Below are positions 39,360 through 41,740 of a stretch of DNA of 64,000 nt, one piece after another (position 1 is the stretch's first letter; every line of letters starts with the position of its first letter). This DNA comes from Auanema rhodensis (taxonomy: Eukaryota; Animalia; Nematoda), in NCBI GenBank assembly GCA_964057225.1, contig OZ059898.1, forward strand, positions 8,370,001 through 8,434,000. The letters are read 5' to 3'. The notes below the pieces were generated by a model. The model saw nothing but the letters and a program-made list of their open reading frames with translations, did no database searches and was not told where the DNA came from. Made by a program: the position numbers and the translations under genes.

Positions 39360-39469
39360 CTATATGATTAATTTTATAAAATATACGTTAAATTTTCAAA
39401 AATATATGTAGACGTGCATACGTCCGATAAAAAAGAAAAGAAAGAAAAACATTATGTTTTTTTTTTATT
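39360..39469 (-). promoter_or_regulatory. Operon intercistronic region: rnp-7 poly(A) signal, U-rich tract, Ur-like element and nuo-4 trans-splice acceptor
   Basis: AATAAA at 39469-39464; U-rich run; stem-loop GGACGT-ATGC-ACGTCT (39425-39410) followed by TATTTT (UAYYUU, 39404-39399); acceptor catatag about 105 nt after the AATAAA and 2 nt before the ATG. Confidence 0.7.
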
Positions 39470-39671
39470 ATAATAATTGTGATGATAATACATGGAACCA
39501 ACAAGATCATAACAACACACTTATGAACAATCGAATGTTATTAAATGAGAAACTTCAACTTGGACCAAGGTGATACCCCATATCAGACGGCGTATCAACA
39601 CCCTTTACAAACTCACCAAGTTGGTAGGGGAGAGACATAACTTACGGAAAATAACATGAGATATAATAAAA

Positions 39672-41346
39672 TTAATAGCGTCTTTCACGTTGATAATCAT
39701 TTCTTCTATATTCTCCCCCCCCTCCTCCTCCTCGATGATCTCCTCCACCGGAACGATATCCATTATTATAACCCCTGTTGCCGCCATAACCACCTCCACC
39801 GCGACGATCATCACGTCGGTCATCACGACGATCATCTCGCCTGTCATCCCTACAAATTTATATTCATTTAAAGCTTTTCAGATAAAAATTACCTTCGTTC
39901 GCGTTCCCTTGATCGACTACGATGTCGTTTGTCTTTTTCACCACGTTCTTTATCTCTCTCAATCCTATCTTTGTCTCTATTATTATTATCACCTCCCGCG
40001 TCTTTTTCTTCCATAGCTTTTCGTGATTCTCTAGCTCTTCTAGTATCGCCTTTGCCGCCACCTACAATAAATCTATAGATCTAGTAACATATCCTAAATT
40101 ACCTAATCGTCTAGGTAGCCAAGACTTCTGTGTGCGACCTCTTTCATAATCAACGACTAGACGCCTACCATCAACTTTAACGCCATCAGCACGTTTATAG
40201 GCATCTAAAAGATAGACTTACAATTACCCTTACAGTGGGAGTGCCAGTTCTTCGTTAGAATACATATATGACTTCCCGCACACAATGATGCTCGGTAATC
40301 TACTCCCTTTACAAACTTTGCGCGCATTCAAAAATCAACTTACGAACATAAACTTACGAAAGCTAAATTCAAAGGGTGGTTCCGCACATCGAGCCAACTT
40401 ACCCGTGTGCTTACCCGAAAATAAACCCAAAAAATGCAAAAAACATTATGGTATACCTATGTCACTACAAGCGACTTCCAAACATACCATCGCATGAGAT
40501 TGAATTGTTCGAGCATTGTTCTGATTCGTACATTTTTTTCATCTTTTACACAAGAAAATCAGAACAAATGCTCATAACAAACCTATTTAACCATATGCAA
40601 TAGAATAGCAAGCCTCAGGCTTTAGGCTGCAATTAAAAACAATGAATCTCAAAATCGCATCTTACGGGGAAACTTACGAGGAAACAAACCTCAACCGCCA
40701 AAAACCCAAAACATTAAATTTCTTTTAAAAAACTTACTGTGCATTTCTGACTTGTCGGAATATTCAATAAAGGAATAACCGCGAGGTTTACCAGTACTAT
40801 CCTGTACCATCACTAACTGCAAAAAGAATGACTTCATAATAAACCTAACTAGGAAGATACCTTTTTTACTTTACCGTAAGTTTCAAACTCACGCCTAAGC
40901 TTACTTTCAGAAGTTTCATAGTTCTATAATTTCAAAGATAAAACAAGAAAAATAGATTTTCCCACAATTCTCGAGATGAACAGGGTTTTATACGGATCCT
41001 CCGTTGCCTTTGGATTATCAGCAGGATTCCATTGTGCAATACCTTGCTCTACTTTATAAGCTAATAGCTCTTCTTTTTCACGACGTTTTCTTTCCCTTTT
41101 TTGTTCCTTCGTTTCGAGAACAACCTTTGGGGGTGTGTCGGCAGGGTTCTAAGTGATAAATGTTAAATATATATAAAAATTAAAACCAACCTCAAACAAA
41201 TGAACATACTCTGCCACTCCGCCATATCGGATCTCAGGAAGTTTTTCGTTTTTCTCAACTAATAGTGGTATAGGAGGAGGAAGATATTGAATTGGAGGCC
41301 TAGCCTCAAATAATAACATCAAATTGGGAGGCAAGAAAGCAGTCAT
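39672..41346 (-). CDS. rnp-7: U1 snRNP 70 kDa protein (U1-70K/SNRNP70), multi-exon
   Basis: [18 protein letters not shown]; [11 protein letters not shown]; [18 protein letters not shown]; [11 protein letters not shown]; EMH|[39 protein letters not shown]; RD/RE/RGG-rich tail ending ERRY*. Confidence 0.96.
40583..40626 (-). other. Putative poison (PTC) cassette exon / alternative 3' splice site inside the long rnp-7 intron
   Basis: gtttttaattgcag|CCTAAAGCC...AAATAG|gtttgt. The upstream exon ends in phase 1 (A), so A+CC TAA gives a stop at the second codon. Confidence 0.6.
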
Positions 41347-41740
41347 TTTTCCTATAAAACATAAATTTTAATTATCATTTACTGTAAGTAATAGTTATAA
41401 CAATATATTCGAACAATTCACCTGAATTGTTGTTAAAAATTTTAAAACATTGCATATATTAGAAGCTTTAGTTTGCACGCCGAATTTTCATTCGTATAAA
41501 CTTGGCGCGCACTATGTGCGGGTCAACTCCATTTTTATATTGATCCGCCCTACGTGCGGCCAGTGTCGCGCGGCGTTGTTTTGCGTCAAGTCCTCCTTTC
41601 TTGGCGCATTCTTTTTAATTATTGTGTTTCAAAATTTCGTTTTGTTGGCTGTACCATTATGCTAAGATGGTCTTTGTAGAGAAAATCATTGTTCATGTTC
41701 TACTAGCTTTTACTACTAATCGCCATTATTGTGCTAAATC
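41347..41740. promoter_or_regulatory. Bidirectional promoter between rnp-7 (minus) and the integrase-H2C2 gene (plus)
   Basis: Head-to-head start codons about 400 nt apart; CpG-rich core (about 41490-41610) with TTGGCGCGC, TCGCGCGGCG and TTGGCGC (E2F/DREAM-like). Confidence 0.65.

Follow-up and report, generated by a model that had tools for sequence, protein, structure and literature searches.

The abundance of U1, a small nuclear ribonucleoprotein (snRNP), sets the recognition of 5' splice sites throughout the genome, and its measurement by cells is understood only for the vertebrate gene for U1-70K, SNRNP70. In intron 7 of SNRNP70, cryptic 5' splice sites bound by U1 activate an upstream poison 3' splice site, that of exon 7a, and the balance between productive and non-productive splicing reports the integrity of U1 (Roesel-Hillgaertner et al., 2013, PMC3798272); the junction between human exons 7a and 8 is visible only with cycloheximide (PMC3798272). 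Here, a candidate nematode counterpart is described from Auanema rhodensis, in a window of 64,000 nucleotides (GenBank assembly GCA_964057225.1, contig OZ059898.1, positions 8,370,001 to 8,434,000; coordinates below count from the first letter of this stretch) that contains, on its minus strand, an ortholog of U1-70K (SNRNP70, rnp-7). Intron 4 of this gene holds an array of motifs resembling 5' splice sites, which we call decoys, and the last of them form a GTAAGG-GTAATT-GTAAGT triplet set directly against the pyrimidine tract of the productive 3' splice site.

Related devices are known from other genes. Pseudo-5' splice sites serve as U1-dependent intronic silencers, an example being the ultraconserved pseudo-5' splice site of ENOX1/Enox (PMC13100119), and a further study attributes to 5' splice site motifs a nuclear retention that depends on U1-70K (PMC9074902). 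The genes for U11-48K and U11/U12-65K carry the U11 snRNP-binding splicing enhancer (USSE), which, in the outline given by a later paper, consists of tandem 5' splice site repeats that exert feedback through an upstream unproductive 3' splice site (Verbeeren et al., 2010, cited in PMC3798272). Our literature search found no paper describing a decoy array in a nematode U1-70K gene or linking rnp-7 with nonsense-mediated decay. In Caenorhabditis elegans, MacMorris, Zorio and Blumenthal reportedly found in 1999 that the uaf-1 gene, which codes for U2AF65, has an alternative exon with repeated matches to the 3' splice site UUUUCAG/R, the mature RNA of which is said to stay nuclear.

The exon peptides of the A. 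rhodensis gene are 76-79% identical over about 194 amino acids to CBR-RNP-7 of C. briggsae and to the U1-70K proteins of C. bovis, C. auriculariae, Diploscapter pachys and Necator, in comparisons for which peptides were translated exon by exon and protein searches used single exons (exon 2) or stored database proteins. The orthologs CBR-RNP-7 and those of C. bovis and D. pachys carry PF12220 (U1snRNP70_N) together with PF00076 (the RNA recognition motif, RRM), and the matches to exon 2 carry PF12220. Intron 4 interrupts the coding sequence between ...EMH and AYK and is twelve-fold longer than the other five introns of the gene, which measure 41-44 nt. Only one copy of the exon 4-exon 5 stretch exists in the 181-Mb genome, which rules out a repeated element or a paralogue.

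The sense strand of intron 4 is heavily loaded with GTAAG. Nine of the 49 copies of this pentamer on the minus strand of the window lie within the intron, the real donor included, as against a maximum of six in 5000 dinucleotide shuffles (Poisson P = 1e-10 relative to the window background), and its antisense strand has none. When only internal copies are counted, there are eight compared with 0.7 expected, a number that none of 2000 dinucleotide shuffles reaches. All eight are arranged in four pairs (40677/40665, 40414/40402, 40357/40343 and 40233/40221) with spacings of 12, 12, 14 and 12 nt, and the probability of that many gaps of 10-15 nt is 0.0007. The triplet is the fourth of these pairs, with GTAATT occupying its spacer, and is no stand-alone device. 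The first pair is a 12-nt tandem duplication, and the second comprises the strongest predicted U1 sites in the array. Six GTAAG and the GTAATT are found downstream of a poison acceptor at 40626, described below, and two GTAAG upstream of it. As a side observation, the working unit of the array may be the tandem pair, as in the U11 USSE. The gene for U1C (locus L075) was also examined for a similar device, and no GTAAG cluster was found in it.

RNA evidence was taken from four public runs of a single study (X1-X4), in the form of assembled contigs covering positions 39400-41500. These contigs represent RNA and not DNA, because their coverage stops at the gene ends; the five small introns are spliced out of them. 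The productive joint between exons 4 and 5 (40738/40204) is present in all four runs. A second joint connects exon 4 with an alternative 3' splice site inside intron 4 (the poison acceptor; Table 1) and is read in frame as A/CC TAA, an immediate stop. In addition, an unspliced contig extends in every run from 40175, which lies 30 nt within exon 5, across the triplet and the other decoys, reaching 40626 in X3 and X4 and 40767, within exon 4, in X1 and X2. Judged by rough contig depth, about 20-25% of the X1/X2 RNA and about 60-65% of the X3/X4 RNA keep the 3' part of intron 4, and the decoy-bearing segment still accumulates unspliced after the poison acceptor has been used. No joint starting from any decoy was seen in the contigs of the four runs, in which assembly loses rare junctions. 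The lack of donor use by the decoys, taken together with the heavy retention, fits decoys that are non-productive and a productive acceptor that is hard to use. An embedded non-coding RNA was considered as the source of the intron coverage and set aside, Rfam giving only a sub-threshold match to mir-50 at 40509-40574 (score 21 bits, cut-off 43, E = 0.33). The runs also fall into two groups, with no poison-acceptor joint seen in X1/X2, and with that joint present and a lower depth of the productive joint in X3/X4. This two-way split points to regulation that depends on condition or stage.

The three units of the triplet, GTAAGG (40233-40228), GTAATT (40227-40222) and GTAAGT (40221-40216), were first noticed in a first-pass annotation made from the DNA alone, which gave them correctly in identity, in position and in distance from the exon: on the minus-strand sequence and by the RNA joint, the last base of the triplet lies 11 nt upstream of exon 5, whose first bases, ATGCC, start at 40204, so that the triplet occupies -29 to -12 relative to the productive acceptor. 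The accompanying argument that the hexamers stand too close to this acceptor to be spliced to it is reasonable, the implied introns being 17, 23 and 29 nt long as compared with 41-44 nt for the five ordinary introns. The U1 snRNA of the same genome starts AAACUUACCUGG, and its 5' end is complementary to GUAAGUUU. With this U1, predicted duplex energies for units 1-3 are -4.8, -6.0 and -5.6 kcal/mol, which places them inside the range predicted for the donors in actual use in the U1-70K gene (-3.6 to -7.9 kcal/mol); GTAATT is in fact the authentic donor hexamer of introns 5 and 6. By predicted pairing, the triplet hexamers are thus credible U1 sites that show no donor use in the contigs, with room for rare use, and to this extent the earlier interpretation of them as U1 sites stands; a selected and separate steric switch at the acceptor is not supported, for the comparative reasons given below. 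Folding of the RNA around the triplet (40185-40330) gave z = +0.52, with nothing found there to sequester or present it. A recursive splice site was also rejected, as the order of its parts is reversed: the donors come first, then the pyrimidine tract with its AG, and directly after this AG the exon (ATGCC).

The genes for U1 snRNA themselves form long tandem arrays, in which the unit recurs about every 727 nt, on contig C3 at about 15.86-16.08 Mb; at least 37 near-identical copies, scoring 107.9 bits, were counted, and dispersed copies occur on C3 and C7.

Seven orthologous introns with both ends were available for comparison, namely those of L006, L008, L011, C. briggsae (L077), D. pachys (L078), C. 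bovis (L079) and C. auriculariae (L080). L006 and L008 are worms from one Logan run (exon 2 identity 85% and 68%, respectively). L011 (positions 946-2287, exon 2 identity 61%) is an animal metagenome contig and the only locus to supply the intron in a metagenome scan with exon 2, which returned mostly distant, non-nematode-like loci. L007 (Strongylus vulgaris), L009 and L010 stop before the 3' part of the intron and lie outside the comparison. In all seven relatives the intron at the identical codon is long (398-1632 nt), and in six, L011 included, there is an excess of GTAAG on the sense strand that is equalled in at most one of 2000 shuffles (0-1/2000). A poison-type acceptor (...cag/CC or GC) is present in seven nematode introns, that is, in the window and in all relatives except L011, and short decoy spacings, of 4-15 nt, recur in all of the orthologous introns. 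The 1.3-kb intron of L011, which stands at the same codon and has a 3' splice site without clean placement, contains 13 internal GTAAG against 1.4 expected, so that the decoy array extends beyond the sampled rhabditids.

What is conserved across these introns, to judge by their sequences, is the kind of content and not the position of each motif. When six orthologous introns are aligned globally, the mean identity is 43% and nothing near the acceptor is conserved in position. In three of eight species, a donor-like motif begins no more than 31 nt from the exon, namely in the window, in L008 (GTAAAG at exactly -29 and GCAAGT at -19) and in D. pachys (GTAAGTTT at -31), compared with 2.6 expected from uniform placement; in the others, the last motif lies 58 nt (L006), 144 nt (C. 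bovis), 149 nt (C. briggsae), 196 nt (L011) and 390 nt (C. auriculariae) from the exon. These counts, together with the lack of positional conservation, support the array and do not support a dedicated device next to the acceptor. The first-pass annotation had made its switch depend on the presence of the triplet in close relatives; the triplet is missing from L006, the closest relative recovered, and from the three Caenorhabditis species, and by this criterion the specific claim of an acceptor switch fails.

The authentic donor of the regulated intron was also recorded in each species. It is weak (GTACGT or GTACGC) in C. briggsae (L077:2119), C. bovis (L079:2135) and D. pachys (L078:2967), strong (GTAAGT or GTAAGA) in the window (40737), L006, L008 and L011, and reads GTGAGT in C. 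auriculariae (L080:2169).

We consider it fairly probable, with appreciable doubt, that the triplet forms the 3' end of an array of non-productive sites for U1 snRNP (pseudo-5' splice sites) in an autoregulatory intron 4 of U1-70K, with possible local occlusion of the acceptor. When U1 snRNP is plentiful, the decoys would be occupied and, if human exon 7a is a guide, would favour the upstream poison acceptor at 40626 through contacts resembling exon definition. The remaining 421 nt, which carry an in-frame stop, are seen to stay unspliced, and decoy occupancy would be the cause. Such RNAs would yield no U1-70K and would probably be held in the nucleus or degraded; in the light of the work on pseudo-5' splice sites and nuclear retention, a retained segment coated with U1 would be unproductive, and probably nuclear or degraded there. 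A local effect could be added to this at the acceptor itself. In a gene with introns of 41-44 nt, geometry confines branch points to about 15-25 nt upstream of the AG, and in intron 4 this stretch consists entirely of units 2 and 3 of the triplet, such that U1 paired at -29 to -12 would be expected to exclude U2 and to crowd U2AF locally. Occlusion of the branch site and U2AF by the triplet is therefore physically plausible in A. rhodensis, given a branch point position estimated from intron size. It looks lineage-specific, an accident of the placement of a decoy pair rather than a conserved second switch.

Several considerations weigh against this picture. The binding of U1 at the decoys is putative and derives from computed complementarity to the 5' end of the genome's own U1, and by the same computation the central decoys, at -11.8 and -14.5 kcal/mol, are stronger sites than the triplet units, at -4.8 to -6.0 kcal/mol. 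The RNA evidence consists of the contigs of one study, from which rare junctions are lost and depths are only rough, and nonsense-mediated decay could hide spliced products of a poison exon, so that the statement that decoys never splice stays short of proof. Furthermore, the intron of C. auriculariae has only 2 internal GTAAG, which is not significant, and the array can accordingly be small.

Under the alternative closest to the original proposal, the triplet would have been selected chiefly as a dedicated steric gate: U1 at -29 to -12 would block the branch site and U2AF and constitute a second autoregulatory arm, independent of the poison acceptor. The units do fill this interval, into which the short introns of the gene force branch points (about -15 to -25), and in A. 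rhodensis a large share of transcripts keep the 3' part of the intron even once the poison acceptor has been used. L008 and D. pachys likewise carry decoys within 31 nt of the exon, but proximal decoys are missing in L006, C. briggsae, C. bovis, C. auriculariae and L011, where the last decoys are 58-390 nt away, and the three species of eight compare with 2.6 by chance. Random placement within intron 4 would bring at least two of the eight GTAAG into the last 31 nt with P = 0.055, which speaks for the gate, and at least one donor-like motif within 31 nt of the acceptor with P of about 0.45. Against the gate stand also the lack of positional alignment among the introns, at 43% mean identity, and the genome-wide count: in 181 Mb, the only GTAAG pair with TTTTAG after it is that of the triplet, versus four hits for the reversed control, so that the arrangement is unique but not enriched. 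On balance we hold such a gate to be unlikely. The bolder form of the idea is quite doubtful in our view; in it, the decoy pair at the acceptor would be a gate operated by U1 on the branch-site and U2AF region, and this second arm of feedback, for which the poison acceptor is not needed, would detain the rest of intron 4 when U1 is abundant. At least three rhabditid lineages (A. rhodensis, L008 and D. pachys) would then have acquired gates of this kind independently.

At the other extreme, the triplet might be a neutral by-product of slippage or duplication of a decoy unit of 6 or 12 nt, with no measurable effect, regulation being left to the stronger decoys and the poison acceptor. It does read as a three-copy repeat of 6 nt, its units rank lowest in the array by predicted U1 binding, a 12-nt tandem duplication is plain in decoy pair 1, and motif positions turn over freely among species. 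However, the 12-14-nt pair format is shared by all eight internal GTAAG (P = 0.0007), which argues that the pair is a maintained unit, and a site overlapping the branch region of the productive acceptor of an essential gene is unlikely to be without effect; we rate this explanation as improbable. Finally, the A-rich hexamers could chiefly provide the branch-site region for the productive acceptor, through the UAAU of the middle unit for example, with their likeness to donors incidental. The branch point must fall approximately there, and GUAAU matches the loose branch-site consensus UnAy, but branch sites of nematodes lack a strong consensus that would demand three GTAA repeats, the flanking units fit the decoy-pair format of the remaining intron, and the relatives have unrelated sequence at this position, which together leave this reading with very little probability.

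Aside from the decoys, intron 4 and its orthologs share a motif that resembles ATAGGTTTGT and lies 40-90 nt after the poison acceptor, in the window as well as in L006, L008, L077, L078, L079 and L080. From its sequence, ATAG/GTTTGT may serve as a weak donor for a short poison exon (40626-40583); no joints at it were seen in the RNA contigs. In the predicted fold of the adjoining hairpin, GGUUUGU is found at the base, and the hairpin could mask this donor. The mir-50 match mentioned above overlaps the same hairpin. Outside the intron, GTGAGT and GTAAGT are present on the minus strand in the 3' untranslated region of the U1-70K gene, at 39616 and 39645.

Table 1. Features of the regulated intron of the A. 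rhodensis U1-70K gene and of its flanking exons, listed in the direction of transcription.
Feature	Position	Strand	Basis or remark
Exon 4, part of RRM; phase 1 at its end, donor CA/GTAAGTTT	40816-40738	minus	RNA contigs
Intron 4, 533 nt, proposed regulated intron	40737-40205	minus	RNA contigs
Decoy pair 1: GTAAGT at 40677, GTAAGA at 40665	40677-40660	minus	between real donor and poison acceptor
Poison (alternative) 3' splice site: AG at 40628-40627, first retained base 40626	40628-40626	minus	joint 40738/40626 in runs X3 and X4
Conserved motif ATAG/GTTTGT	40587-40577	minus	some 44 nt downstream of the poison acceptor; found in full or nearly in full in 7 species
Stable hairpin with GGUUUGU at its base	40583-40502	minus	-27.7 kcal/mol, z = -5.5; 0/200 shuffles fold as well
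Decoy pair 2: GG/GTAAGC at 40414, GG/GTAAGT at 40402	40414-40397	minus	predicted U1 energies -11.8 and -14.5 kcal/mol
Decoy pair 3: GTAAGTTT at 40357, GTAAGTTG at 40343	40357-40338	minus	GTAAG scan and U1 pairing
GTAAGG-GTAATT-GTAAGT triplet (decoy pair 4)	40233-40216	minus	sequence reading, U1 pairing energies, pair spacing
Productive 3' splice site of intron 4, pyrimidine tract with AG: CTATCTTTTAG	40215-40205	minus	sequence; joint 40738/40204 in 4/4 RNA contig runs
Exon 5, C-terminal part of RRM (AYKRADG...LPRRLG)	40204-40101	minus	RNA contigs; 82-97% identical to exon 5 of relatives

The combination, in A. rhodensis and seven relatives, of a poison acceptor with a U1 decoy array in one oversized intron of U1-70K points to a U1-sensing circuit that is either old or repeatedly evolved, in nematodes that are genetically tractable. 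The location of the triplet offers a clean test of whether U1 beside a branch site can keep an intron unspliced.

Compared with the pseudo-5' splice site of ENOX1/Enox, where unspliced intronic motifs of the GUAAGU type repress a nearby splice unit via core proteins of the U1 snRNP and respond to the level of U1-70K, the worm intron would, by analogy, employ the same kind of motif. The ENOX1/Enox element, however, consists of one 9-mer, ultraconserved in position, that lies downstream of an exon, whereas the worm has an array prone to turnover, with the triplet placed upstream of an acceptor. With the USSE, as far as the outline cited above describes it, the array has in common the tandem-pair format and its residence in a gene for a protein of the very snRNP that recognises the motifs. 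The USSE uses motifs of the U12 type and U11, and those of the worm are U1-type GTAAG; the U12-type consensus is absent here, so that the array is not a USSE and the resemblance is one of analogy only. The reported uaf-1 arrangement is the nematode parallel, since both are splicing-factor genes in which an array of motifs for the gene's own factor lies in a retained segment and the RNA is unproductive, with the difference that the uaf-1 motifs are of the acceptor type, for U2AF, and those of U1-70K of the donor type, for U1.

The closest likeness is to exon 7a of SNRNP70, and the analogy supports the intron 4 array as its probable nematode counterpart, in a comparison of gene, content and output. 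Both genes belong to the same family; in both, an intronic alternative 3' splice site brings a premature stop, and a cluster of motifs resembling 5' splice sites follows downstream of this poison acceptor. Both also show the junction into the poison segment but not the onward one, there being no joint from a decoy to exon 5 in the worm contigs, and both are proposed to sense intact U1 snRNP, for the worm by analogy. In contrast to the 3-4 sites (A-D) of vertebrates, the worm has 8-10 decoys organised in pairs spaced 12-14 nt, one of which precedes the poison acceptor while another adjoins the productive one, and the retained form of the worm RNA is abundant at steady state.

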